A stretch of 63,782 nucleotides of DNA, filler included, from Octopus bimaculoides (taxonomy: Eukaryota): assembly GCF_001194135.2 (NCBI RefSeq). It is 4 parts of 4 records of this genome, joined end to end, with 100 filler letters (N's around TTAATTAATTAA, not from the genome) between each part and the next. Parts side by side here need not be neighbours in the genome. Positions count along the whole stretch, not along the records: positions 36,112 to 62,417 come from NC_068998.1; 3 more parts are not named here. One strand, written 5' to 3'. Under the pieces are notes generated by a model. That model did no database searches. It was given only the letters and a program-made list of their open reading frames with translations, and had not been told where the DNA came from. The position numbers and the translations under genes are program-made. Shown here in pieces: positions 13,904 to 60,647 of this stretch. Each line of letters opens with the position of its first letter. Within the stretch, counting starts at the first letter, position 1.

Positions 13904-14439
13904 TACATGGTATGCATGTGTATACATACATACATACATACATATATATANNNNNNNNNNNNNNNNNTATATATATATATATATATATACCAAATGATTA
14001 GAAGACAAAGGAAATTCTTTACCACATCTTTGATTATTCGTTACAATTGTTTCTGTACCAACTCTACTCTAGTTTCCCACAAATTAACGTAATGTTTGCA
14101 GTTTTTACACATTAGAGAGGCACTTCATCAGATTTGCATACATGAAGAACTGTAGCTAAGTTGTTTGGGTGTCCACACATCAGTAAGTGGCTAATCCAGC
14201 GATGTGTACGAGTAATGTTGCCCTGCTCACCTAGGTTGTATCATTCGAAAGTTGAAACAATGTGTAGTGTATTGCGACTAGCATTTTAAAAAACATTCTA
14301 TAGCCTGGTCAATTACATGTTCTGTGTGAATTTGCAATTTGATGACACGTCATTTGGGCAATGCTGCTGGAATATTTACCGTATCGTACAAAATACATAG
14401 CACTCACGGTGGCGTTAGAAGGAATGAAGTTTGTGTTTC

Positions 14440-14620
14440 TCCGTCAGTTACAACGTGTATCCCAGTTGATCCCATAAATAGAACTGACTTCCTGTGAAAT
14501 TAAAGTACAAGTACCAGAGCACCGCACAGAGATACGTACTCTTAACGTAATTCTCAGGGTGATTCAATGTACGTTGAACGGGACAAGGATTGCCCTTTGA
14601 AAAAACAGGTACAAGAGTGG
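14440..14620 (-). mobile_element. SINE family C, 3' half
   Basis: Reverse complement aligns by eye to 2670-2850. Confidence 0.6.
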
Positions 14621-16114
14621 AGTGGAACAACATGACATAAAGTGCCTCACAACGCGCCTTTCAGGGAGCGAATTAATAGTTTTTAATATGAGTTATTGTC
14701 TTTAAGTATATATAGTGAATATTTCTGTCGCTAATACACCACAATGTAATTCGTATCTACTATCTAGTACAAGTATTGCTATATGCATGAAAATTATAGT
14801 TAAATATCCACTAATAACGAAAATAAAACCTTGTCGAAATAATAGAACCAATTAGACTAAACGTGGTCAAAGACCAGACAATGGGAGAACCTTAAACAGT
14901 AAAAATCACAAACTGAAACGATATATGTTGCAGAACACAAGATACTCTAAACGATGGGCCAAAGTTGAATGTATTCAAATTTAACATCAGCAGAATAAAA
15001 TTTAATGTAAATTGTGATAGGTTCCCAATCATTAACTGCTCTATTGGAAATTGTTGTGGTTTCCACACTAAGAAATAGTATTCAGTCCAACGTCGTTCAC
15101 AGCGCACAAAACATTTATATACTGTCTGGGAATTACACGATATAAGAGAATCACCACTACTTACACTTTCATGTATTAGTATTGGATGCCCACATCACAT
15201 AACGCAAGTTACTGCACTAAACTACAACAGCAGCATAAAACTTATACAAACTGCTTAGAGACTAACAAGATTAATTCATAAAACGCGCTAGACTAAATGA
15301 AACTGAAAGTATAAACCACCATTAAATTAGTGTCCACTAAACATAATTTAAATAAAAAGGAAAAAAACTAATATAAAATATTCCTTATCATATCTATGTG
15401 CTGATGACTACTAACACAAAATTACATAAAGCAAAAACAATGTTATAAGGCAATTAACATTAAAATCACAAGCTATGATTATACCAGATAGCTAAGACAC
15501 ATGTTACATGTAACAACAATACCAACGGGAAAAAAAGCGAACTCAAAAGATTAATAGCTAAACGTCACTACTGTAAATGAAATTAAAATGATAAAGAAAA
15601 ATTAAACTAGTGTTTAATAAATGAAACTACAATGAATTAAAGAATAAACAAGCATAAAATATTGCTTATCAAGTTCATGTATTAATGACTGCTAAAACGG
15701 ATGTAACTTAACCAAAAACAAGCATTACACTAGAATTAATTAAAAAGCAAACCAATCAGTATAGGAAAAACGTAAAAACATTGTGAACCATGATTACATC
15801 AGTGATGCAGTAATCGTGTTGCAAGGCCAGTATAATGATTTACAGTTTTCCCTCCTACGCAACCTAGTTTCATAAAGGTCAAACTTAGCTGTGCTGTAAG
15901 TATAGGTGTGAAGAAACAAAGGGAGATAAACACTGGAAACCATTCAGAAACATTCGTTACTAACACATTAAGACGATAAACACTTAAGACTGTCTAGCAT
16001 TACTAAATACTACACGGATATTTCTGGGGATGGTCATATTTTGCTAATAAAACACACGCACTATTTTGTTGCTCTTTACTTCAGCGTCATCATCATCATC
16101 ATCATTATTATTGC

Positions 16115-37020: not shown

Positions 37021-40000
37021 ATGTTCTCCTTGGAGCGTACTCATTATTATAGCAGTCACATCTTCCTGTTTTATCTACTGCTGTTGGTTACCGCACAACA
37101 GTATAGTCTTCGATTGGACGAACACAACTCGCCTCCTGACGTTATACCTACTAGTCCATACAACTTGAAGTACTCAGTACCATTAAATGAACTGACTAGT
37201 TATCCAATTTTTGCCTATTTTTATAGGTTGGATGGAAGTGAAGTTAAGGATGGTTCTCTAAACGATCAAGAAGTAACAGTGACCAGTAGGAGTACTACGA
37301 ACGTTGACAGCTGGAGAATGTCCGGTGGTAAGCTATGTCAAAATACTAATCCTGATGTATTTCTACCCATGAGATATAATCGCCACACATATGTCAAGAA
37401 ATGTGGCTCGACAATCGGACCGACCACATTAAAAGTGAAAGTATTCAATGGAACCATTATAATCGATTGGCTTATGCATTCTCACGAAAGGTATTTAGTG
37501 CCAGACATCGACCGAATATATAGAATCGATGTCCCTGGTCTATCTATTCGGATAGACACGTATCCTTTCCGTATAACCACTCCTGCTGCTAAACTCGTCA
37601 TCACCAAACACCCACCGTCAAACATCCAAGCCAACACAGGTTTTAATGTTACGGCCGAGATACATGATAATGTAGGTAAAGTTATTACGTCGGGTCTAGA
37701 CTCCATCGCTTTTGTAGAGTTGACTGTACCATATCGCTATAAAGAATTTTATTATCGAAGGAATTTAGACATGATGTTGAAACACACTGACATCCGATTG
37801 GCAGGCAGTTCGACCATGATACACCAAAGTACCAATGATATAATTATACGAAAACAAGCCGTAGCAGGTAAAGTTATATTCGAAGACATTCGGATTTTAG
37901 ATGTTGTAGTCGGCTTTCGCTTGAATTTAACTATGTATATGGCGAGAGATCCATGGATCAGAATACCGAACTGTAAAACTTGCTATGATGATTTAAGTCG
38001 TAAAAACATTTATGAATCCGAAAACTATGTTAAATTTTTTGATTTATCCGACAGCATTCTTGCAGGAATTCCAGCTATGGCTTTTACGAAACCTATTAAT
38101 GTTGAAGCCCAGAGACTTGCAAGTTTACAAATTATTCACAATTTAAAATCAACCAGTTCATCTATCAAAATTACTCGAAATTTTCCTATTCCAGGAGAAA
38201 TGAAAATAATGATTATAGATGTTAATGGGAATAGAATTTACTCTGGTCCAGATTCCAAGATAAACATCGATGTTAAAACGACCCCCCCGAATATATGCCT
38301 TTCAACGGACATGACAAAAACGATAATAGATGGCTTGGTGGAACTAAGAGGTTCAATATGTTCAATTTCTAGTTCGGTGAGGTTGATAATTTCCTCAACT
38401 TCACATGCAGGTGTAAGCGTTCAAACTCCAATTTTTACTGTGATTGGTCTAGTTCATATAGGGCACATTGGGGATTTCAATACAGCTGGAACGATTAAAA
38501 GTCCTTATCCACATATAGATACTTTTGTAAAATTCGCTGCTGCTGACATAAGCTGGGGCGGGATTCCTGGAATTTTTGAACAGTATGGTATGTCAATTGC
38601 AGTTGAATCAATCAACACTAATGATGAAATAGAATTTACTGTTCAGCAGTACCAAATGTATAAAGAAACACATCAAAATAGCGAATCGGAATTGAGAGGT
38701 ATCCTTCTGTCAGCAAGTTCATTGGTTACAAAAGCCGTAGCCAGAAACTCAATGATAGACAACATTCCGGTCATTGCATTGACTGAGAAAGATAATTCTT
38801 TTCTGCGATACAATTTATTCAATAAAATTTGCTGGGGATGGCCAGAAATTTACAGTTTTTTTCTGAAAGCTTGTAAAGATAGAAGATGGCTCCAGATGTC
38901 ATCTATCAGCTCCAGCGAAAAGTCTGTTGATATTGAATTCTTCAACAGTGCACAAATATTCGACGTTAAGATCACAATGCCAGTGATCGTCCCAGAATTC
39001 GACTCTTACAGCGATTCCCCTTGGCAACCAGAATTTTATGGTGAAGCAATGAGATTTCTAAAGGATGCCGGGACAAAAATAATTATTTGTTTTGCCACTC
39101 GCTCTTTACCATACATTTTGCGTTCTGGAATCCGATTTGGTATTTCTGCACTTGATGGTTATCAGTGGCTTTTTATAAGTGAAAATGCTCGATCCTTTCC
39201 TTTAATGAACGAAGCCGTCTGTCAATGGGAACCGAAATGTACCCATGCTTATCGTGGGTCACTACTATTCATAGAAACTTACGATTTTGGAAACTTCCAG
39301 ACAGAAAGATGGCTACATACACTCGAAAGATTTTATAGTATTGACAGAACAGAGTATTTAGGAAGTAAAGCAATATATCCAAATGAAGAACTAGCATCTT
39401 ATTTGGCACTGGGTTATGATGCCATGTGGTTGTTGGCTCAAGCAATCAGCAACATAGTTTCCAGACAAAAGACCGCTTTTGGAGATGAAATTTCAAACGA
39501 ACTGAAAAAAATTAATTTGAATGGACTGTCAGGAAAGGTGCGTCTCGATGAGAGCGGTAAAAGATCTGACTTTATGGGAAGTATCATTTTGATTAATCCC
39601 ATCGGCAATGTTTCTGAATCCCACCCTAATTTAGTAGCCCTCCCGATAAGACTTATACTATGGAAAGATTCTGGTGAAATAGAGTTGAATTACCAAGCTA
39701 AATACCCATTGAATAAGCCTCCATATAATTATGTACTACCACCAATGTCGCTTCCCGTGGCTGATACGTACAATATTAGAACATATCATTCAGTTTCAGG
39801 AATGATTAGCGAGCATGAAAATAAATTAATTGAAGCTCCAAACGAACCATGGCCATCTATAAGCTTTGAACGGACGGAGAAGTTAGTAACACCTTTTAGG
39901 TGTAAACAAAACTGTGGTGATCTTATATCGGAAGACGATGTTACAGTCTTCAATAATGGTGTCTGCATTGCGGAGAACGTGTGTGTGTGTAACAAAGGAT

Positions 40001-42072
40001 ATTTAGGAGATGGATGTATTAATGTTTCATGCAGTTGCGTTCATGGCGGATGTAGCTCGCCAGACATATGTACCTGTAAATCGGGCTGGAAAGGGTCGCG
40101 CTGTGACCAACCGGTATGTAACACTCCTTGCAAGCATGGAAAATGCGTGAAGCCCGATAAATGCCAGTGTGAATCATCAATGTGGCTCGGTAAATATTGC
40201 TCAATACACCTTGCAGCCATTCTCGTTCCAGTTATTTGTTCTCTGGTGTTGCTCATATGTTTTATATATCTATTGATAAGGTATTTAATCAAACGCATCC
40301 AACTCAGAACTGCACTGGCAAATCTCGAGTGGCTCGTTATCTGGGACGAAGCTGTTAAAATCGATTCTCAAGAAAAAGATACGAAGAACGTTTCAACTGC
40401 GACCCATGTTAGTCGAATGTTTAATGACTTGTACACGTGGAAGCGTGAGAAATGGTTTGTGAAACGCTTCAACTGTAGAACCATTGACCTTGATGATGAA
40501 GCGGTCCGACTAGAAATGGTTGAACTGACGACTTTGAATCACAAAAATTTAATCATTTACGGTGGAGCCTGTCTCACATATCCAAACGTGTCTTTTTTTC
40601 TTGAGCCAGCGAATAAGGGCAGTCTTGAAGATATTCTTATCAATGATGCTATACAACTTGGTTGGGATTTCCGATTTTCTTTTCTAAAAGACATCTGCTG
40701 TGGAATGGATTTCATTCACAGTAAAACTAATATTGGCTCTCATGGACGTCTCAAATCATCGAATTGTTTACTTGATAACCGCTGGTGCATTCGTTTGTCC
40801 GGTTTTGGCTGTCCATCAATTCGCTATGGACAGTACCTTATGGCTGGAGAAGAGAAAGATTGGCAGACTGAATTATTAAAGATGAACGAACTTTTTTGGA
40901 CGGCTCCTGAACTACTAATAACTGTTGAGTGTCTAAATGATGTTCAGATGGGTACTAAAGAAGGGGATATTTATTCATTTGGAATAATTGCTTCTGAAAT
41001 TGCCACCCGAGACATACCGTTCGCTTATGAACGGATGTTCCTATCTGTAAGCGCTATTTTGGATCTCATAGTGGAGAAAGACAGTCCTCTTCTAGAAGAG
41101 GAGAGAAAAGTATGGCAGTCAATTGGAGGCGATATATTTGTTATTCGGCCACAACTTAAAAGCGAGCATTTGCCTGAAGGGAAAACAACTCAGAGAAAAT
41201 TTCTCAAAATGCTTGAAGACGTATGGAACGATGAACCTCTGCTCAGACCTCCATTTTCAAAGCTTCTTGCAGTGTTAGATAATATTCATCCGACAAAGGG
41301 AGAACTAATGGACAACTTAATTCGACTATTGGAATCTTATTCCAATAATCTTGAACAAGTGGTGATTGAGCGCACCCACGACCTCGAAGTAGAAAAGGCA
41401 AAAATTGATCATATTATAAGTCAAATGTTGCCCAAGAAAGTGGTAGAGGAATTAAAACACGGAAATAAAGTGGAACCAGAAGACTTCAGCTGTGTCACTG
41501 TATTCTATAGTGATATAGTCGGATTTACAACGATCGCGAAAAACAGCCAGCCTATGCAAGTGGTTGATCTGTTGAACAACCTCTACAGTACATTCGATTC
41601 TATACTGCACAAATATGACGTCTACAAAGTGGAAACTATCGGAGATGCCTATGTTGTTGCAAGTGGCGTCCCCGAACGAAATGGAAATGCTCATGCAGGT
41701 GAAATTACGACAGCAGCGATGGACTTAGTCATAACCATGTTGGCAATGAAAGTACCGCATTTACCCGACTGTAAACTTCTGTTGCGTATCGGCGCTCACT
41801 CTGGACCAGTTGTTGCCGGAGTTGTTGGTTTAAAGATGCCTCGCTACACCCTTTTTGGCGACACAATGTTAATTGCAGCCACGATGGAATCGACTTCAGA
41901 ACCTTTGCGTATTCAGCTTAGTGAACACACAGTAAAAATTCTTGATCAACTCGGAGGATATGAAACTGAGCTACGCGGAGAAATGACTGTTGCTGGACGT
42001 GCTCTAACAACATTCTGGCTGATAAGTAAAGACGGATACGAAGGAACTCTTCCTCAGGTTGTGTGTCAATAA
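37021..42072 (+). CDS. Intronless receptor-type guanylate cyclase-like protein, 1683 aa (SP - 3 Ig-like modules - ANF receptor domain - 3 EGF - TM - pseudokinase - coiled coil - cyclase with degenerate C2-side residues)
   Basis: Uninterrupted ORF. Hydrophobic signal aa ~1-25; LALGYDAMWLLAQA and NGLSGKVRLDESGKR (ANF receptor); three Cys-rich EGF units aa 961-1060; TM aa ~1064-1086; HGRLKSSNC, FWTAPELL, GDIYSFGII (rGC kinase homology); YSDIVGFT, VYKVETIGDAY, GLKMPRY (cyclase). Confidence 0.93.
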   Translation: MFSLERTHYYSSHIFLFYLLLLVTAQQYSLRLDEHNSPPDVIPTSPYNLKYSVPLNELTSYPIFAYFYRLDGSEVKDGSLNDQEVTVTSRSTTNVDSWRMSGGKLCQNTNPDVFLPMRYNRHTYVKKCGSTIGPTTLKVKVFNGTIIIDWLMHSHERYLVPDIDRIYRIDVPGLSIRIDTYPFRITTPAAKLVITKHPPSNIQANTGFNVTAEIHDNVGKVITSGLDSIAFVELTVPYRYKEFYYRRNLDMMLKHTDIRLAGSSTMIHQSTNDIIIRKQAVAGKVIFEDIRILDVVVGFRLNLTMYMARDPWIRIPNCKTCYDDLSRKNIYESENYVKFFDLSDSILAGIPAMAFTKPINVEAQRLASLQIIHNLKSTSSSIKITRNFPIPGEMKIMIIDVNGNRIYSGPDSKINIDVKTTPPNICLSTDMTKTIIDGLVELRGSICSISSSVRLIISSTSHAGVSVQTPIFTVIGLVHIGHIGDFNTAGTIKSPYPHIDTFVKFAAADISWGGIPGIFEQYGMSIAVESINTNDEIEFTVQQYQMYKETHQNSESELRGILLSASSLVTKAVARNSMIDNIPVIALTEKDNSFLRYNLFNKICWGWPEIYSFFLKACKDRRWLQMSSISSSEKSVDIEFFNSAQIFDVKITMPVIVPEFDSYSDSPWQPEFYGEAMRFLKDAGTKIIICFATRSLPYILRSGIRFGISALDGYQWLFISENARSFPLMNEAVCQWEPKCTHAYRGSLLFIETYDFGNFQTERWLHTLERFYSIDRTEYLGSKAIYPNEELASYLALGYDAMWLLAQAISNIVSRQKTAFGDEISNELKKINLNGLSGKVRLDESGKRSDFMGSIILINPIGNVSESHPNLVALPIRLILWKDSGEIELNYQAKYPLNKPPYNYVLPPMSLPVADTYNIRTYHSVSGMISEHENKLIEAPNEPWPSISFERTEKLVTPFRCKQNCGDLISEDDVTVFNNGVCIAENVCVCNKGYLGDGCINVSCSCVHGGCSSPDICTCKSGWKGSRCDQPVCNTPCKHGKCVKPDKCQCESSMWLGKYCSIHLAAILVPVICSLVLLICFIYLLIRYLIKRIQLRTALANLEWLVIWDEAVKIDSQEKDTKNVSTATHVSRMFNDLYTWKREKWFVKRFNCRTIDLDDEAVRLEMVELTTLNHKNLIIYGGACLTYPNVSFFLEPANKGSLEDILINDAIQLGWDFRFSFLKDICCGMDFIHSKTNIGSHGRLKSSNCLLDNRWCIRLSGFGCPSIRYGQYLMAGEEKDWQTELLKMNELFWTAPELLITVECLNDVQMGTKEGDIYSFGIIASEIATRDIPFAYERMFLSVSAILDLIVEKDSPLLEEERKVWQSIGGDIFVIRPQLKSEHLPEGKTTQRKFLKMLEDVWNDEPLLRPPFSKLLAVLDNIHPTKGELMDNLIRLLESYSNNLEQVVIERTHDLEVEKAKIDHIISQMLPKKVVEELKHGNKVEPEDFSCVTVFYSDIVGFTTIAKNSQPMQVVDLLNNLYSTFDSILHKYDVYKVETIGDAYVVASGVPERNGNAHAGEITTAAMDLVITMLAMKVPHLPDCKLLLRIGAHSGPVVAGVVGLKMPRYTLFGDTMLIAATMESTSEPLRIQLSEHTVKILDQLGGYETELRGEMTVAGRALTTFWLISKDGYEGTLPQVVCQ

Positions 42073-42189: not shown

Positions 42190-42321
42190 AGTAATAATAA
42201 TGATGATGGTGATGATGATGACAACAGCAACAACAATACCAGCAGTAATAGTAGTAATAGCAGCAGCAGCAACAACAACAGCAGCAGCCTCAGCAGCAGT
42301 AGTAGTAGTAGTAGTAGTAGT

Positions 42322-42394
<73 letters not shown>

Positions 42395-48511: not shown

Positions 48512-49650
48512 GGTGCTACTTTGGCGTGTGATCTACAACTTAAAGGGCGATTACTTTAGGTTACTTTTTAGTTCCTTTTCAATTTCTAAAAACCTTTAAG
48601 ATGTTGGCTAAAGATTTTTTACAATAAATTCTTTTGTACATACTTAGCATGTCTTGCAAACAACTTGCACATGCAAGTGCTACTAGTCGAGAATTCCGCA
48701 TACCGGAAGCCAGCAAGTGTATGGGGTCATCAGGAGAGAATGCGCGCCGTTTCGGGACCTACCTCTCGATAGCATCAATGTGCACCCCGCCCCTTACTGA
48801 TATGAGGCCCAGCTTGCTAGATCAACTGGTAATTAAATATAGCTAAATATTACTCTAGCCATCGCTCATCGTCCCTTTTTAACCAAATTCAGTGGCTAGC
48901 CTTTTCCACTGTAGTTTGGATATCAGTCATGGTGGTATTCACCTTACGATGAGTTAGGCCTAACGATAACAACAGTCGTCTCACACTGAGTCCAACAAAC
49001 CCTCTACTTCGATTGGAAAATTCTCCGCTTTNNNNNNNNNNNNNNNNNNNNNNNNNNNNNNNNNNNNNNNNNNNNNNNNNNNNNNNNNNNNNNNNNNNNN
49101 NNNNNNNNNNNNNNNNNNNNNNNNNNNNNNNNNNNNNNNNNNNNNNATAATGGTCAATCTTTCGAGCCCGAGCGGCGTCCATGTTATCTTCATGAGGAAC
49201 CGTTAACTCGACTAGATTTACAACTTTCTTCCCTTCACACCTCATTAAAATGTTCGGTTTTTTCGTAACTGGGACGGGAAAGAGTCCCTGGCATCCTGGT
49301 AAATTTGCAGTCACCTCCTAATAGCCGTTCCACTTTTCATTTCTCACAGGAAGTTTCTTATTCTTCTTGAAACGGATCCGCTGACCTGAGCGCACGAAGG
49401 TAATGAAATCTCTAGTTGGTACTTTCAATGGATTTTTCAAAATTCTTACAATTTTAATAATAATAAAACCATGTTTCATTTATGTCTTTGTAAATAATAA
49501 TAATAATGATAAACCATGAATAAACAACGTAATAATTAAAATAAGCGATTAGATCACACAAGCTTGACATTCGCGAGTTTTGCAAAGAAACTAAAAACTA
49601 ACCTAAAGTGATCGCCCTTGAAGTTGTAAATCGCACGCCAAAGTAGCACC
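48512..49650. repeat. 62-bp inverted repeat pair (48512-48573 / 49589-49650) enclosing the Hero fragment
   Basis: 57/62 identity between the left arm and the reverse complement of the right arm. Confidence 0.75.
48850..49400 (-). mobile_element. Hero-clade-like RLE non-LTR retrotransposon 3' end
   Basis: KPNILM...KVVNLVELTVPHEDNMDAARARK..HY...RGFVGLSVRRLLLSLGL...VEKASH. Confidence 0.7.
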
Positions 49651-51384
49651 CAATTTTTTTTACAACAAATCGCCGTACCATTTGTATAAGATACATAACA
49701 AGATTAATAATTTATTGACTTCTAATAATTATATACTTTCCTTAAAGATATATCCACACTAGGGCATTAGAATAGCGCTATACTGTAGCAAACAGTCTTC
49801 ACACAATATGCTTGGCTCGAAGGATAGGTTTGGTTAAGCTGAGTATAGGTCTGTTTGCTGTGAAAAAAAGACTTTCACAATTCCATATCCCACTAAAAAA
49901 AAAAAGAAAGAAAAGAGTTGGATCCTGCGCCCCACCACTTTTTCTCGGGCACTACCGGTGGAATGTATTTCCCACGTTGGAAATCACTGGTTTACATGAA
50001 CTGAACTATTGTTTTTTTCTCGTAAACGTTCAGTTTCAGTTTCATTTGTTTGTTTTATCAGTATTTTTTCGCATTATATGCCTATTCCAAAATTTCACAT
50101 GACTTTATTCTTCAAAACTTATTAAATCTTCCGTCTTTGAATGTTTTGTCGTCCTTATGTTGTCATCACGTACAAAATGCCAGCTTCCAATACATAATTA
50201 TTGAAAGTAATCTCAAATAATGTTATATGAATATAAAAACTGCAAATAATATTGCTGTATGATGTAGAAACATATGTACCCAGGCAAAATTAAAGCCAGT
50301 CTATGTTCGGATTGTCCTTGCACAGGGGCCATCCAGACTCCCGTCTTCGCCGTGAGCAAGGATTTATCTTCTCTCTTCGCTCCTTTGCACCACATGGGCT
50401 CAACTAATCTCCCCTCTTCACCTAATCTTCCTCCTCTCTTCTTTTCCTCTCACACCAACTTCCTCCCACCCACCTCTCCTCTCTTGCTCTGATACCTACT
50501 TCCTCTCTTCACTCCTACCCACTTTCTACCTTCCACCCTCTCCCTTCATCGTCACCCCCTCCCTCGTTACCCCACCCCTACACATTCTAACCCCACCATC
50601 CCTATACAACCCATCCCATCACCACCCCATCACTTACACCCCACTCCCACATACCCCACACCACACCACATNNNNNNNNNNNNNNNNNNNNNNNNNNNNN
50701 NNNNNNNNNNNNNNNNNNNNNNNNNNNNNNNNNNNNNNNNNNNNNNNNNNNNNNNNNNNNNNNNNNNNNNNNNNNNNNNNNNNNNNNNNNNNNNNNNNNN
50801 NNNNNNNNNNNNNNNNNNNNNNNNNNNNNNNNNNNNNNNNNNNNNNNNNNNNNNNNNNNNNNNNNNNNNNNNNNTATATATAGAGAGAGAGAGAGAGACA
50901 GAGAGAGACAGAGAGAGACAGAGAGAGACAGAGAGAGACAGAGAGAGACAGAGAGAGGCAGACAGACAGATATATATATATATATATATATAATTTATGA
51001 AGGTATCATTTATTCTATTATTATCGAATATAACTATTTTAAGAATGATAATAACAGAATCAATGATACAGGCGACAGCAGGTCAAAAAAATAGCATTAA
51101 ATAGCCGAGGGATTAAAATTAATCAAAGGACATACTAAGTCTGTCTACCTGCTTGAAATAACAGTCAGATCTCGTTATTAAATCGCCAAAAATTCACTGT
51201 TGATAACTACAGAAATCAAACTAAGGCAAATTTGGTTAAGACAATCTACTTACATACATTTGGATTTTCGTGGACCAGTTTCTGCATGAGCAATATAAGC
51301 CTTAGCTTCTTCAGCACGTATTCCCACGCATTAGTATTTTTTAAGTAGTAGGTTGCAAGGCTGACTTTGTCTTGGTTTAAGGTT

Positions 51385-52732: not shown

Positions 52733-55700
52733 TACCCCCACACCTTTGAAAACTAACTAATCTACCTCTACCCCCGCCCTACTCACATCCCTCTATTCAA
52801 TTCCATATTCCTCTATTGACCATAACACCCCACCACACCCCATCCAATACCAACTGAATGTCCTTGTCCTACCCGCCAGCCACTGAACCAGTCAACTCAT
52901 TTCCCTCAAATAATAGCCATCACTGTTTCTCAATCTCAACCTTCATACAAACTAACACAAAGGTCATTCTTCACATACTACCTAAACTATCATTCCCCCT
53001 TCTTCCACCTCTACTGCTATCACTAGCCTCATTATTAACCCTAACCCCCCAAACTATTTTCTCCTTCCACTACTCTCTATTTAAACACTACAACTCCTTT
53101 TTCTAATACACTTAGTTCTCCATTCCACCTTTAATCTCCATTCTGTCAACACTTCAAGTGTAAAATTCTTCCCTGAACATGGACACTGGTGGTATCCGAT
53201 GATGAAATCAAGTTACAAGCATTGTTTTGGACCACCAAGCCCCCAGAAACAGCTGTTGGATTCGTAAAACTCCTACTCAACCCCCTTAATGTATACATAA
53301 GTACATTTTTGTATCAAATGTATTTAATATTTTCTGTATATCGACTTGCCTAACATTTGTCCCTACATTTACTCCTGTACCTGCTCAAGTTCAAATCTCT
53401 TGAGCACTTCGAAGTGTATTCTATACAGAGAATACTCATCACCAGAACGGTCCCCAATTATGCCAACCTCTTAAGTACATTATATCATTATAAAACACGT
53501 TTTATTCTGATGAATACAGGAATTTAACAATGAAAGATATCTAAAATTATTTTAAATCCACGGCACATACATATTAATGATCCTACGACTGGCTCTTGCC
53601 GGTAATATTGTAAAATTCATGTATTTATCGGAAGAAATGTTTTTTTTTATAATGATATAATGTACTCATTGATCAATTAAAACATTTGTTAAAAACGGCT
53701 ATAATGAATTGACACCTGTCCATCAACTGTTATTTATTTATAATTCCCCTGTCTCGGAACATGGCCCTCGCATATATATTCCGAAGTATATTATGGACTG
53801 TATATTTAATATATATGTACATGTCTGAATAGATCAAGAGAGAATTATATATTCAGTCGGGTCCAGTTAACGGCATACATTACCCGAATATCCTTCTGCC
53901 AGTACTTTTGTACCAAGGTTGGAATTCATCTATAACTGTAGTGTGTACATTTTATTCCGACATAATTAGGTGCCTCAACTTTAAGCACCTTATTCAACTG
54001 GATCTTGTTATATTAGGTGTGTGTGTGCGTGTGTATATATATGCATATATATATATATANNNNNNNNNNNNNNNNNNNNNNNNNNNNNNNNNNNNNNNNN
54101 NNNNNNNNNNNNNNNNNNNNNNNNNNNNNNNNNNNNNNNNNNNNNNNNNNNNNNNNNNNNNNNNNNNNNNNNNNNNNNNNNNNNNNNNNNNNNNNNNNNN
54201 NNNNNNNNNNNNNNNNNNNNNNNNNNNNNNNNNNNNNNNNNNNNNNNNNNNNNNNNNNNNNNNNNNNNNNNNNNNNNNNNNNNNNNNNNNNNNNNNNNNN
54301 NNNNNNNNNNNNNNNNNNNNNNNNNNNNNNNNNNNNNNNNNNNNNNNNNNNNNNNNNNNNNNNNNNNNNNNNNNNNNNNNNNNNNNNNNNNNNNNNNNNN
54401 NNNNNNNNNNNNNNNNNNNNNNNNNNNNNNNNNNNNNNNNNNNNNNNNNNNNNNNNNNNNNNNNNNNNNNNNNNNNNNNNNNNNNNNNNNNNNNNNNNNN
54501 NNNNNNNNNNNNNNNNNNNNNNNNNNNNNNNNNNNNNNNNNNNNNNNNNNNNNNNNNNNNNNNNNNNNNNNNNNNNNNNNNNNNNNNNNNNNNNNNNNNN
54601 NNNNNNNNNNNNNNNNNNNNNNNNNNNNNNNNNNNNNNNNNNNNNNNNNNNNNNNNNNNNNNNNNNNNNNNNNNNNNNNNNNNNNNNNNNNNNNNNNNNN
54701 NNNNNNNNNNNNNNNNNNNNNNNNNNNNNNNNNNNNNNNNNNNNNNNNNNNNNNNNNNNNNNNNNNNNNNNNNNNNNNNNNNNNNNNNNNNNNNNNNNNN
54801 NNNNNNNNNNNNNNNNNNNNNNNNNNNNNNNNNNNNNNNAGAAGAGGTCAGAAAAGGGTCAAGTGATGGAGACACCGCTTCGAAGACCGTTGTGACTTCG
54901 ATGAACGCTTTGATGAATATAATGTTTTCAACACCCATCTAGCTTATATTAACCATCTAGACATCAAAACAAACAGTGGTTTTGCAAAAATGAAAACTAC
55001 CTAAAAGTGTCTAAAATCGACTGGAAATCACAAAATAAGCATTTTCAAGTTTTGTTGCTTTTTCATGGTTATTTGCCAAATTTTGTGAGTTTGTGTTTTC
55101 TGAAAACGGTTGTGACTTCGGTATTAGAGAAATAGAGGATTATTTATTTGCGTTACAATTTAGAAAAACAGTAAATAGTTGTCACTATAGTGCTCGGAGT
55201 TTCAAATGTCGGAGCGAAGAGCTACGACACATTCTCGTCGATTATTAATGGCAACAGACGCTATGAAAAGGAAATCATTAAATAAAAGGGAAGTAACTCT
55301 AATAGATGGAAAAAGAAAAATGAAAAGATACACGCAGCAATATTCTCACAATACATACACATAAACCTCCTGCGTTCACAACGTCTACATACATACACAT
55401 TCACACAAACATGTATACGTACATGTACACACACACGCACACACACAAATATATATGTATGTAAGTACTCATACATGCACACATATCCACACACATAACG
55501 CACACACACACACAGACACACACACACATACACACACACACACACACAACACACACACATATATATATACGCAACCTCATCCTCATATACACATAGTTGC
55601 TTACATGCATACAAGTAACATAATACATATATATTTAGACATTTATACGTATAAATATATGTATATATATACAGACATACATTCACACTCCCGCATACAT

Positions 55701-56001
55701 ATATATATATGTATACGTATGTATATATATTGTATGTATATATATGTGTATGCGTGTGTATATATGTGTATGTGTATATGTATGTATATGAGTATAAGAC
55801 TGTCTGGTGCATACGTGCGACTTTCATGCACACGTCCCCTTTACTTATACGGATATGCATATGATTGTATATGTGCGGGTGTAGGAGTGATATATATATA
55901 TNNNNNNNNNNNNNNNNNNNNNNNNNNNNNNNNNNNNNNNNNNNNNNNNNNNNNNNNNNNNNNNNNNNNNNNNNNNNNNNNNNNNNNNNNNNNNNNNNNN
56001 N

Positions 56002-57317
56002 ATACTATTTAAACGAAGATTCAGGTTAAACTAAAATTCTTAACGAACCTTTGGATTAAAAAACAATTTCAACGAAGTTTTACATTAAACTAAATTTCTT
56101 AACGAATTTTTCGTTTAAAATACAAATTAAATGAATTTTAGGTAAAACTATAATAATTAACGATTCTTACGTTTAAAATGCAATTTAAACGAAGTTTTAG
56201 GTTAAACTAAATTTCTTTCCGAATCTTACGTTAAGAATAACATTTAAACAAAGTGTTTGTTTAAACTAAAATTCTTAACAAATCTTTCGTTTAAAATACA
56301 ATTTAAAGGAAGTTTCAGTTTAAACTAAAATTCTAAACGAACCTTTATTTAAAAATACAATTGCAACGAAATTTTAGGTTAAACTAAAATACTTAATGAA
56401 TCTTTTCGTTTAAAATACAATTTAAACGAAGTTTTAGGTAAAACAAGAATTCTTAACGATTCCTACGTTTAATACACAATTTAAACGAAGTTTTAGCTGA
56501 AACTAAAATAAATAACTCATCTTACGTTTAGAATACAATTTAAACGAAGATTTAGTCTAAACTAAGTTGCATTTAGAATTCAATTTAAACGAACTTGTTG
56601 GTTAAACTAAAATTCTTAACGAATCTTTCGTTTAAAATACTATTTAAACGAAGTTTAAGGTTAAACTAAAATTCTTAAGGAATAATGTTTCACAAACTAT
56701 TTAAACGAAGTTTTAGGTTAAACTGAAATTCTAAACGAATCTTACGTTGAAAATATAATTTCTACGAAGTTTTATTTAAACTAATATCCCTAACGAATCT
56801 TACGTTTGAAATACAATTTAAACGAAGTTGTACGTTACACTAAACTTCTTCACGAATCTTACCTTTAAAATACAATTTAAACCAAGTTTTATGTTAAACT
56901 AAAATTCTTAACGATTCTTACGTTTAACATACAATTTAAATGCAATTTTAGCGTGTATAATTTAAACGAAGTTTTAAGTTAAGCTAAAGTGTTTAACGAA
57001 TCTTACGTTTAAAATACAATTTAAACGAAGTTTTAGTTTAAACTAAAATTCTCAACGAATCTTTCGTTTAAAATACATTTTAAACGAAGTTTTCGTTTAA
57101 ACTAAAATAATTAACGAATCTTCCGTTTAAAATACAATTTAAACGATGTTTTTGTTTAAACGAATATAATTAAGGCATGTTACGTTTAAAATAAAATTTA
57201 AACGAAGTTTTAGGTTAAACTAATATTCTTAACGAAACTTTCGTTTAAAATACAATGTAAACGAAGTTTTAGGTTAAACTTAAATTCTTAACGAATCTTT
57301 CTTTTAAAATACAATTT
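56002..57317. repeat. 59-bp AT-rich satellite, ~22 units, dimer of ~29/30-bp hairpin subunits
   Basis: Consensus AACGAATCTT(A/T)CGTTTAAAATACAATTTAAACGAAGTTTTAGGTTAAACTAAAATTCTT; unit starts at 56995, 57054 and 57113 (period 59). Confidence 0.9.
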
Positions 57318-59396: not shown

Positions 59397-60647
59397 AAAA
59401 TTTCAGATGTTGGATCGTGTTAGACACAGCACTGATTGCTGCAAAAGAGAGAGTATATCCACTGACAGCTTTTCGGTGCATTCAAAACTCACATACCCCC
59501 ACCCAATTTTCCATGACTGGTTAGGGCCTGAAATACTCCAAACGGACGCATAGCATGTTGCTTAGTCGAATTAGCCCATCATTTTCTCCACAAATGTTTT
59601 GTTGTCAATGCTGCACTTTCCCATATCACCTGTTTCAACATGACTGTAATATATTATACACAAACTATGNNNNNNNNNNNNNNNNNNNNNNNNNNNNNNN
59701 NNNNNNNNNNNNNNNNNNNNNNNNNNNNNNNNNNNNNNNNNNNNNNNNNNNNNNNNNNNNNNNNNNNNNNNNNNNNNNNNNNNNNNNNNNNNNNNNNNNN
59801 NNNNNNNNNNNNNNNNNNNNNNNNNNNNNNNNNNNNNNNNNNNNNNNNNNNNNNNNNNNNNNNNNNNNNNNNNNNNNNNNNNNNNNNNNNNNNNNNNNNN
59901 NNNNNNNNNNNNNNNNNNNNNNNNNNNNNNNNNNNNNNNNNNNNNNNNNNNNNNNNNNNNNNNNNNNNNNNNNNNNNNNNNNNNNNNNNNNNNNNNNNNN
60001 NNNNNNNNNNNNNNNNNNNNNNNNNNNNNNNNNNNNNNNNNNNNNNNNNNNNNNNNNNNNNNNNNNNNNNNNNNNNNNNNNNNNNNNNNNNNNNNNNNNN
60101 NNNNNNNNNNNNNNNNNNNNNNNNNNNNNNNNNNNNNNNNNNNNNNNNNNNNNNNNNNNNNNNNNNNNNNNNNNNNNNNNNNNNNNNNNNNNNNNNNNNN
60201 NNNNNNNNNNNNNNNNNNNNNNNNNNNNNNNNNNNNNNNNNNNNNNNNNNNNNNNNNNNNNNNNNNNNNNNNNNNNNNNNNNNNNNNNNNNNNNNNNNNN
60301 NNNNNNNNNNNNNNNNNNNNNNNNNNNNNNNNNNNNNNNNNNNNNNNNNNNNNNNNNNNNNNNNNNNNNNNNNNNNNNNNNNNNNNNNNNNNNNNNNNNN
60401 NNNNNNNNNNNNNNNNNNNNNNNNNNNNNNNNNNNNNNNNNNNNNNNNNNNNNNNNNNNNNNNNNNNNNNNNNNNNNNNNNNNNNNNNNNNNNNNNNNNN
60501 NNNNNNNNNNNNNNNNNNNNNNNNNNNNNNNNNNNNNNNNNNNNNNNNNNNNNNNNNNNNNNNNNNNNNNNNNNNNNNNNNNNNNNNNNNNNNNNNNNNN
60601 NNNNNNNNNNNNNNNNNNNNNNNNNNNNNNNNNNNNNNNNNNNNNNC

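Follow-up and report, generated by a model that had tools for sequence, protein, structure and literature searches.

An Intronless Octopus Receptor Guanylate Cyclase Lacking One Face of the Active Site, and a Sister Clade with Complementary Changes

The DNA window analysed here, a stretch of 63,782 nucleotides made of four joined parts of the Octopus bimaculoides genome (RefSeq assembly GCF_001194135.2), carries a receptor guanylate cyclase gene at positions 37021–42072 of the plus strand, in the part derived from NC_068998.1 (positions 36112–62417). The gene consists of one uninterrupted, intronless open reading frame (ORF) encoding 1683 amino acids, followed by a stop codon, and belongs to a lineage designated clade A of a molluscan family of giant receptors. 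Its cyclase domain keeps the two metal-binding aspartates and the arginine supplied by one face of a class III cyclase active site, while the asparagine, arginine and lysine of the opposite face are lost, and this half-site pattern of the alpha/C1 type is under purifying selection. The sister lineage, clade B, carries changes on the other face, and both clades occur in the same genomes. These residue patterns make it somewhat probable that the window gene encodes a functional alpha/C1-type subunit, which would produce cyclic GMP (cGMP) as a heterodimer with a clade-B paralog and would form one canonical and one degenerate site.

Active-Site Residues of the Cyclase Domain

Residues were assigned from a HMMER alignment to human NPR1 (PDB 9bcv), which covers residues 795–1024 of NPR1, and from a MAFFT alignment with NPR1, GC-C, soluble guanylate cyclase (sGC) alpha1 and beta1, and the C1 and C2 domains of adenylyl cyclase AC9; the sGC alpha1/beta1, NPR1 and GC-C sequences were verified against the PDB. 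The closest solved structures are human NPR1 (E-value 4e-70) and GC-C, and the cyclase domain scored 239 bits to NPR1 versus 145 bits to sGC alpha1. The cyclase domain region, residues 1481–1670, corresponds to window positions 41461–42030.

As established for adenylyl cyclase and sGC, each site of a head-to-tail class III cyclase dimer combines the Asp face of one chain with the Asn/Arg/Lys face of its partner chain. A preliminary description, made from the window sequence alone, had listed D1498, D1542, R1589 and E1538 as kept and C>T1610, N>L1617, R>T1621 and K>A1658 as changed, in an otherwise intact ORF of 5 kb, and both alignments and the 1683 uninterrupted codons confirmed these calls. 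The NPR1 motif MPRYCLFGDTVNTASRMES reads MPRYTLFGDTMLIAATMES in the window protein, and MKGKG of NPR1 reads VAGRA. The lost lysine is the first K of KGKG, which is kept in GC-C (LKGRG) and in the AC8 C2 domain. Further clade-specific changes within the beta-face motifs are V1616M, T1618I, S1620A and G1661A. The residue set of a self-sufficient homodimeric class III cyclase is incomplete in this protein: Asp/Asp/Arg are present, with Leu in place of Asn, Thr in place of Arg, and Ala in place of Lys.

In the guanine-specifying Glu/Cys pair, the Glu is kept and the Cys is replaced by Thr. The C>T1610 change alone is not clearly a loss, since P0025, a receptor cyclase that is canonical in other respects, has Thr at the same position. 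In mechanistic terms, E1538 is part of the Asn/Arg (beta/C2) face rather than of the Asp face, and it is kept in sGC alpha1 too. Rescue of the window gene by RNA editing could be ruled out from its codons (T1610 ACC, L1617 TTA, T1621 ACG, A1658 GCT): because the Asn, Arg and Lys positions are encoded by TTA, ACG and GCT, respectively, adenosine-to-inosine (A-to-I) editing cannot restore any of the three, as had been argued earlier for this gene.

Family, Gene Structure and Phylogeny

A search of a large protein collection revealed a compact family of proteins of about 1690 amino acids that align from end to end; in the alignment with 21 members, identities are 29–85% and many residues are invariant. 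The nearest relatives of the window protein are the O. vulgaris 'receptor-type guanylate cyclase gcy-4-like' protein (91% identity), a protein from a third octopod (87%), and one from Argonauta hians (66%), and an O. sinensis protein was assigned to the same 90% cluster. Members from Haliotis, Gigantopelta and Potamilus have the whole architecture in common with the window protein at 33–40% identity. The family is small and restricted, since an ectodomain-only search against 1.84 billion cluster representatives gave only 19 hits below 1e-30. No description of the cephalopod receptor family was found in the literature searched. Some distant receptor cyclases sharing part of the ectodomain, P0039 from Strigamia maritima (GEDVLIAQYLEA), P0094 (VNVASQMES) and P0142 (VNIAESMES), lack the transition-state Arg, and receptor cyclases of a half-site or degenerate kind may be widespread in non-vertebrates.

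The Haliotis rufescens gene (locus L010, 3001–95546) has at least 25 exons spread across 92 kb, while every cephalopod member examined is a single ORF, including the window gene, its O. vulgaris ortholog (L001, 10001–15049), two Argonauta genes (L002), two clade-B genes of O. vulgaris (L011), and four genes in assembly ERZ21867824. Since the cephalopod members are intronless and the Haliotis rufescens gene is multi-exon, the cephalopod family most likely originated from a retrocopy, which was later multiplied by tandem duplication.

On a neighbour-joining tree of Kimura distances (1651 columns, 200 bootstraps), the cephalopod members were monophyletic with respect to gastropods and bivalves (100%), and clade A (100%) was sister to a lineage uniting clades B and C (100%). 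Each of the two cephalopod sides comprises an octopod and a decapodiform subclade, the latter recognised as such because one of its clusters includes a Sepia pharaonis protein. Clade C (P0020, P0022 and P0023) is nested within decapodiform clade B, and its ORFs are intact. One clade-A gene on OX597831 and a tandem array of clade-B genes on OX597825 were found in O. vulgaris, and two clade-A genes and at least three clade-B genes (P0017, P0019 and P0036) in Argonauta hians, so that clade-B genes are the more numerous in both species. Assembly ERZ21867824 contains two tandem clade-A genes, at least one clade-B gene, and one clade-C gene adjacent to a clade-B gene.

Examination of these loci at the DNA level provided several additional observations. 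The second clade-A gene of Argonauta hians (L002, 17268–22334) is intact, lies 2.2 kb downstream of the ortholog of the window gene (10001–15046), is absent from the called genes, and has the same MPRYTLFGDTMLIAATMESS and VAGRI motifs; the dN/dS value (the ratio of non-synonymous to synonymous substitution rates) between the cyclase domains of the two copies is 0.37, and dS is uneven along the gene. The clade-C gene P0020 (L012, 10001–15037) is located about 12 kb from the clade-B gene P0013 (L009, 8000–13102) on contig ctg89756l. The O. vulgaris gene models P0004, P0007 and P0008 ('speract receptor-like', 1866–2485 amino acids) fuse parts of neighbouring intronless tandem genes; in the DNA of OX597825.1, P0004 corresponds to two complete ORFs of 1743 and 1693 amino acids (L011, 7382–12613 and 37004–42085).

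Complementary Alterations in Clades A and B

The states of the two faces in the main groups of the family are compared in Table 1. Both orthologs and paralogs, in octopods as well as in decapodiforms, have lost Asn, Arg and Lys: the same pattern was found in O. vulgaris, O. sinensis, P0002, the two tandem Argonauta genes, and the decapodiform proteins P0005, P0033 and P0181.

Table 1. Motifs of the two active-site faces in members of the family.
Group	Asp face	Asn/Arg/Lys face
Gastropod and bivalve members	SDIVGFT, ETIGDAY (canonical)	CLFGDTVNTASRMES, VKGKG (canonical)
Clade A	SDIVGFT, ETIGDAY, LRIG exact	Cys to Thr; Asn to Leu/Gln; Arg to Thr/Asn; Lys to Ala/Cys
Clade B	SDIV(D/N)F(A/S/G/C), ETISDSY	CLFGDTVNTASRM and KG(K/R)G exact in all but a few members
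Clade C	Degenerate (e.g., DTINEFH)	Degenerate (e.g., GETVEIAFGM)

The comparison was based on 83 cyclase-domain columns that are invariant in NPR1, GC-C, P0025 and four gastropod or bivalve proteins. Eleven of these are changed in clade A, seven of them in the NTASR and KGKG motifs (indicative hypergeometric P = 0.0015). Five are changed in clade B, and four of the five lie beside the metal aspartates, at D+3, D+5, D-1 and D+1 (indicative P = 0.009); these are G>N/D and T>S/A/G/C in DIVGFT, and G>S and A>S/T in TIGDAY. The distributions of changes differ between the two clades (indicative P = 0.01), and no column in the motifs of either face is altered in both; the sole doubly changed column, H1632Q, is outside the motifs. 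The altered positions vary inside the clades, with Ser, Gly, Cys or Ala in place of Thr1503 in clade B and with variable residues at 1617, 1621, 1658 and 1661 in clade A, while the kept faces are invariant within each clade, P0006 of clade A excepted.

The preliminary description had suggested looking for a receptor cyclase of the reciprocal type, with the first Asp lost and the Asn and Arg kept. Clade B matches this expectation on the Asn/Arg/Lys face; as for the Asp face, most of its members keep both metal aspartates, and it is the neighbouring phosphate-loop residues that are altered. One clade-B gene of O. vulgaris lacks the second Asp (ETISASY). A candidate partner complementary in this partial sense is present in the genomes of O. 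vulgaris, Argonauta and ERZ21867824, although its metal aspartates are not lost.

The exceptional clade-A copy, the decapodiform gene P0006 (L008, 10001–15097), forms a tandem pair with P0181 (L013, 10001–15118) on contig ctg106761l of ERZ21867824, and both of its metal aspartates are replaced by Asn. AAT encodes Asn at both positions, where the adjacent gene retains GAT; if A-to-I editing acted on the first A of AAT, the codon would be read as GAT (Asp), so that both aspartates could in principle be restored.

Selection on the Window Gene

The dN/dS values were calculated by domain using the Nei–Gojobori method for the window gene versus O. vulgaris, the third octopod and Argonauta (Table 2). 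The values for the cyclase domain are far below 1 (P = 4e-8 to 2e-38) and differ from those of the N-terminal region in Fisher tests (P = 2.5e-7 to 3.7e-10). The N-terminal value of about 1.0 versus O. vulgaris is as expected for a rapidly changing ligand-recognition surface.

Table 2. dN/dS of the window gene by domain.
Region	vs O. vulgaris	vs third octopod	vs Argonauta
Immunoglobulin (Ig)-like N-terminal region	1.03	0.75	0.29
Rest of ectodomain (ANF-receptor region)	0.83	0.60	0.33
Kinase-homology domain	0.24
Linker helix	0 non-synonymous	0 non-synonymous	0.132
Cyclase domain	0.022 (1 non-synonymous, 13 synonymous)	0.033	0.055 (dS 1.5)

Among orthologs, the codons of the substituted residues differ synonymously: T1610 is encoded by ACC, ACT or ACA, A1620 by GCC, GCA or GCT, and T1621 by ACG, ACA or ACT. 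Since these codons turn over while the amino acids stay the same, the substituted residues themselves are maintained. These results agree with the earlier proposal that the asymmetry is selected rather than a sign of decay. A decaying retro-pseudogene, or a sequencing or assembly error at the catalytic motifs, might have been suspected for an intronless gene in a gap-rich draft region, but has practically no chance of being correct and is refuted by the identical motifs and intact 5-kb ORFs that five or more additional species or assemblies share with the window, by the low cyclase dN/dS, and by the fact that the whole cephalopod family is intronless.

In the P0006/P0181 tandem pair, cyclase dN/dS is 0.20, which indicates relaxed constraint. 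The dN/dS for clade B is uninformative, being based on two tandem O. vulgaris genes with a cyclase dS of only 0.06. In these two genes (L011), dS is 0.34–0.42 in the ectodomain and the kinase-homology domain versus 0.06 in the cyclase domain, which suggests that gene conversion homogenises the catalytic end of the tandem clade-B genes.

Possible Heterodimeric Enzyme and Alternative Explanations

The clade-A chain would be able to contribute the two metal aspartates, the phosphate loop and the Arg of LRIG to a composite site, but not the Asn, Arg and Lys of the opposite subunit; therefore, a clade-A homodimer should be essentially inactive. A clade-B chain would supply the Glu/Cys/Asn/Arg/Lys face, its own Asp-face loops being altered. 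In an A:B dimer, the site composed of the A Asp face and the B Asn/Arg face would be fully canonical and catalytic, while the site composed of the B Asp face and the A Asn/Arg face would be degenerate and might serve as a non-catalytic nucleotide-binding or allosteric pocket. Physical pairing of the A and B chains is suggested by the sequences, since the two clades altered both halves of one composite site and kept both halves of the other, and since both clades are found in O. vulgaris, Argonauta and ERZ21867824.

Several observations weigh against such a heterodimer. Most clade-B genes have both aspartates, so their products are possibly active as homodimers that need no partner, and the reciprocity is only partial. 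The effect attributed to the G>N/D change in the clade-B phosphate loop is extrapolated from adenylyl cyclase structures. The motif windows used for the counts were derived from known catalytic motifs but were set after the alignment had been seen, which makes the P values given above indicative only. Rapid evolution of the clade-A ectodomain, with dN/dS of about 1 between close species, is not what would be expected of a co-receptor that is shared and conserved. A structural or dimerisation role, rather than catalysis, could account for the strong constraint on the cyclase domain, and P0006, without both aspartates, indicates that the Asp face is dispensable in at least one clade-A copy. Finally, the Logan contigs considered as evidence of expression (L003–L006 from four runs and L007 from another run) were not counted as transcripts; L003–L006 are colinear with the genome and have microsatellite ends and thus may be genomic unitigs, and no paper mentioning the run or assembly accessions turned up in the literature searched.

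One alternative is that the window protein is a decoy or dominant-negative subunit, which binds the ligand or pairs with active receptor cyclases and lowers cGMP without ever being catalytic. This is unlikely, although a homodimer lacking Asn, Arg and Lys would suit such a role, NPRC offers a precedent by suppressing NPRA and NPRB via heterodimers unable to assemble a cyclase domain (PMC10334801), and the existence of P0006 and of clade C, degenerate on both faces, implies that fully dead members are tolerated in the family. The GFT loop, the metal aspartates and the Arg of LRIG would be superfluous in a pure decoy, yet they are invariant in all clade-A genes but P0006, and cyclase dN/dS is 0.02–0.06. 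Moreover, a heterodimer with a complete partner would retain one intact site and would be at most half-inhibitory. The relaxed constraint expected upon loss of the catalytic need is seen in the P0006 tandem pair and not in the window gene. The strict retention of Asp/Asp/Arg favours a co-receptor that would complete one site over a decoy.

Less likely still is a non-catalytic signalling receptor, in which a pseudo-enzyme homodimer would use its kinase-homology and cyclase-like domains to scaffold signalling or to sense nucleotides, with no partner cyclase. The linker, kinase-homology and cyclase domains are the most constrained parts of the protein, the linker being free of non-synonymous changes versus two species, and binding of a nucleotide without turnover would still require Asp/Asp/Arg and Glu. 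On the other hand, no receptor-cyclase precedent was found in the literature searched, and the precisely complementary changes of the sister clade would be left unexplained.

A slim chance remains for a homodimer that is still active through a non-canonical mechanism or at low turnover, possibly with an altered substrate preference owing to Thr in place of Cys. The presence of this Thr in the otherwise canonical P0025 and the strong conservation of the cyclase domain are in line with activity; against it, Asn, Arg and Lys were lost together and no nearby residues are able to substitute for them. The sGC alpha1 and adenylyl cyclase C1 domains, which have the same losses, are inactive alone.

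Returning to the heterodimer of clade-A and clade-B chains, one could hypothesise, more tentatively than for the pairing itself, that an alpha/beta enzyme resembling sGC, but located at the cell surface, evolved anew and independently in coleoid cephalopods. In this scenario, one retrocopy derived from a canonical multi-exon receptor cyclase of molluscs would have been duplicated, and each daughter would have kept a different half of the active site. Products of one or two alpha-like (clade A) genes would then pair with those of several beta-like (clade B) genes, and the two fast-evolving ectodomains would provide combinatorial ligand specificity. The asymmetry of catalytic and allosteric sites, which is dynamic in mammalian GC-A and GC-B, would thereby become fixed in the sequence.

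Comparison with Known Cyclases

The closest mechanistic precedent is the obligate receptor-cyclase heterodimer ODR-1/DAF-11 of C. elegans, in which each monomer gives part of one site (PMC5225109). Both systems consist of single-pass receptor cyclases with a kinase-homology domain and an incomplete residue set per monomer. The cephalopod case differs in being independent and in involving a cephalopod-specific family of intronless genes, to whose ectodomain about four Ig-like domains and three EGF modules have been added. The nematode pair also has genetic and biochemical support, whereas the cephalopod pairing is deduced from residue patterns and clade B keeps its metal aspartates.

Like the window protein, sGC alpha1 keeps SDIVGFT, ETIGDAY and RIG and has its Asn and Arg replaced (GNNVTLANKFES in alpha1 versus GDTMLIAATMES in the window protein); at the V-N-T-A-S-R positions, alpha1 reads V-T-L-A-N-K. 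Clade B resembles sGC beta1 in keeping NxxxR and in diverging next to the aspartates (FSGIVGFN and VGDKY in beta1), at the same Thr and Ala positions, but the first Asp and the LRIG Arg are lost in beta1. Unlike sGC, the window protein has neither H-NOX nor PAS domains and is a transmembrane protein whose cyclase domain falls among those of receptor cyclases. Pfam searches assigned it ANF_receptor, EGF and kinase-homology domains, so it is not a member of the sGC alpha family and would be alpha-like in its working only.

The C1 and C2 domains of adenylyl cyclase likewise form one catalytic and one degenerate site, C1 giving Asp/Asp/Arg and C2 giving Asn/Arg/Lys together with the base-specifying residues. 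The AC9 C2 motif ASIVNFS has the same G>N and T>S changes as SDIVNFS of clade B. In adenylyl cyclases, however, a single polypeptide contains both halves and forskolin binds at the degenerate site, while the cephalopod halves are separate receptor genes with separate ectodomains.

The mammalian receptors GC-A and GC-B (NPR1 and NPR2) have in common with the window protein the core of ANF-receptor region, transmembrane helix, kinase-homology domain, helix and cyclase. Co-expressed inactive mutants of GC-A and GC-B complement each other, and their homodimers are asymmetric, with one catalytic and one allosteric nucleotide site (PMC3765477). Each mammalian chain carries a complete residue set, whereas the cephalopod asymmetry would be encoded in the sequence. 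Finally, NPR-C, a non-catalytic relative of receptor cyclases that pairs with active receptors (PMC10334801), is the model for a decoy; it differs in missing the whole intracellular enzyme, while the window protein has a constrained cyclase domain with an intact Asp face.

Protein Architecture and Genomic Surroundings

The features of the gene are listed in Table 3. The protein has the complete architecture of a receptor guanylate cyclase, with a predicted signal peptide, an ANF-receptor ectodomain, a single transmembrane segment, a kinase-homology domain, a linker helix and a C-terminal cyclase domain, the last assigned to the class III nucleotidyl cyclases by a full-length match to the PF00211 profile. 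The Ig-like N-terminal region of about 455 amino acids, the ANF region and the three EGF modules identify it as a member of the family of giant (about 1690 amino acids) molluscan receptor guanylate cyclases.

Table 3. Features of the clade-A receptor guanylate cyclase gene (window positions; aa, amino acids).
Feature	Position	Strand	Evidence
Complete ORF of a clade-A giant receptor guanylate cyclase	37021..42072	+	Orthologous single ORFs in L001 and L002
Predicted signal peptide, aa 1–25	37021..37095	+	Hydrophobic N-terminus; AlphaFold2 (AF2) helix 5–25, low pLDDT
Family-specific N-terminal region, aa 26–480, about four tandem Ig-like beta-sandwich domains	37096..38460	+	AF2 pLDDT 86.4, all-beta
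ANF-receptor / periplasmic-binding-protein type ligand-binding region	38461..39900	+	PF01094, 44.6 bits; Pfam match aa 670–854 (nt 39028–39582)
Three EGF-like modules, aa 964–1064	39910..40212	+	EGF_TEN, EGF_PEAR1L and EGF_2 matches; cysteines near-invariant in the family alignment
Transmembrane helix, aa 1064–1086, LAAILVPVICSLVLLICFIYLLI	40210..40278	+	The protein's highest Kyte–Doolittle 19-residue windows
Kinase-homology domain, aa 1140–1417	40438..41271	+	PF07714, PF00069; HGRLKSSNC at 1241
Linker / signalling-helix (dimerisation) segment, aa 1421–1484	41281..41472	+	Alignment to NPR1 795–840
Class III cyclase domain, aa 1485–1668	41473..42024	+	PF00211 (Guanylate_cyc), 179.4 bits vs cut-off 21.9; profile positions 2–182 of 183
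D1498-IVGF-T1503, intact alpha/C1-face motif (first metal Asp and phosphate loop)	41512..41529	+	Same as NPR1, GC-C and sGC alpha1
E1538-TIG-D1542-A1543, canonical (purine-specifying Glu, second metal Asp)	41632..41649	+	NPR1/MAFFT alignments, codons
R1589 of LRIG, kept (alpha/C1-face Arg)	41785..41787	+	MAFFT alignment, codons
T1610 (ACC) at the guanine-specifying Cys position	41848..41850	+	NPR1/MAFFT alignments, codons
M1616-L-I-A-A-T1621 for V-N-T-A-S-R; ribose-binding Asn and transition-state Arg lost	41866..41883	+	NPR1/MAFFT alignments
A1658-G-R-A1661 for K-G-K-G; phosphate-binding Lys lost	41992..42003	+	NPR1/MAFFT alignments

No Pfam model matched the N-terminal 480 or so amino acids, and a Foldseek search of this region against the PDB revealed generic Ig-like arrays only, with TM scores of 0.25 or lower, none of them a specific structural relative. 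Nor did Pfam scans of unrelated proteins carrying the N-terminal repeat give a curated domain.

A tblastn search of positions 36112–62417 with all family proteins found nothing beyond the ORF, and hence no partner gene in this part of the window. The 20 kb downstream of the gene consist of repeats and assembly gaps. Immediately 3' of the gene is an (AGT)n microsatellite (42298–42394), and a satellite with 22 copies of a unit of about 59 bp occupies positions 56002–57317. Five runs of N represent assembly gaps (49032–49146, 50672–50874, 54060–54839, 55902–56001 and 59670–60646), and most of the apparent dips of G+C content in the window are due to the two longest, at 54060–54839 and 59670–60646. 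The flanks of the gene are colinear with O. vulgaris at about 89% identity, versus 94% within the gene.

Implications

Split sites as a principle were described before in sGC, adenylyl cyclase and ODR-1/DAF-11; the new element would be an independent and apparently retrogene-derived origin in a cephalopod family that has a clear candidate partner clade with reciprocal changes. If the proposed pairing is correct, the cephalopod case adds one more independent evolution of split sites among class III cyclases to those of adenylyl cyclase C1/C2, sGC alpha/beta and ODR-1/DAF-11. Its history is unusually clear, running from a canonical multi-exon ancestor type, still seen in gastropods, through retrocopy and duplication to complementary loss on two faces, and it would provide a clean natural experiment in the conversion of a homodimeric enzyme into an obligate heterodimer. 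The annotation names 'gcy-4-like' and 'speract receptor-like' mask proteins which, judged by their residues, are unlikely to be stand-alone enzymes. The data also point to a large, fast-evolving, cephalopod-specific family of surface receptors, for which, by analogy, chemosensation or gamete recognition are candidate roles.

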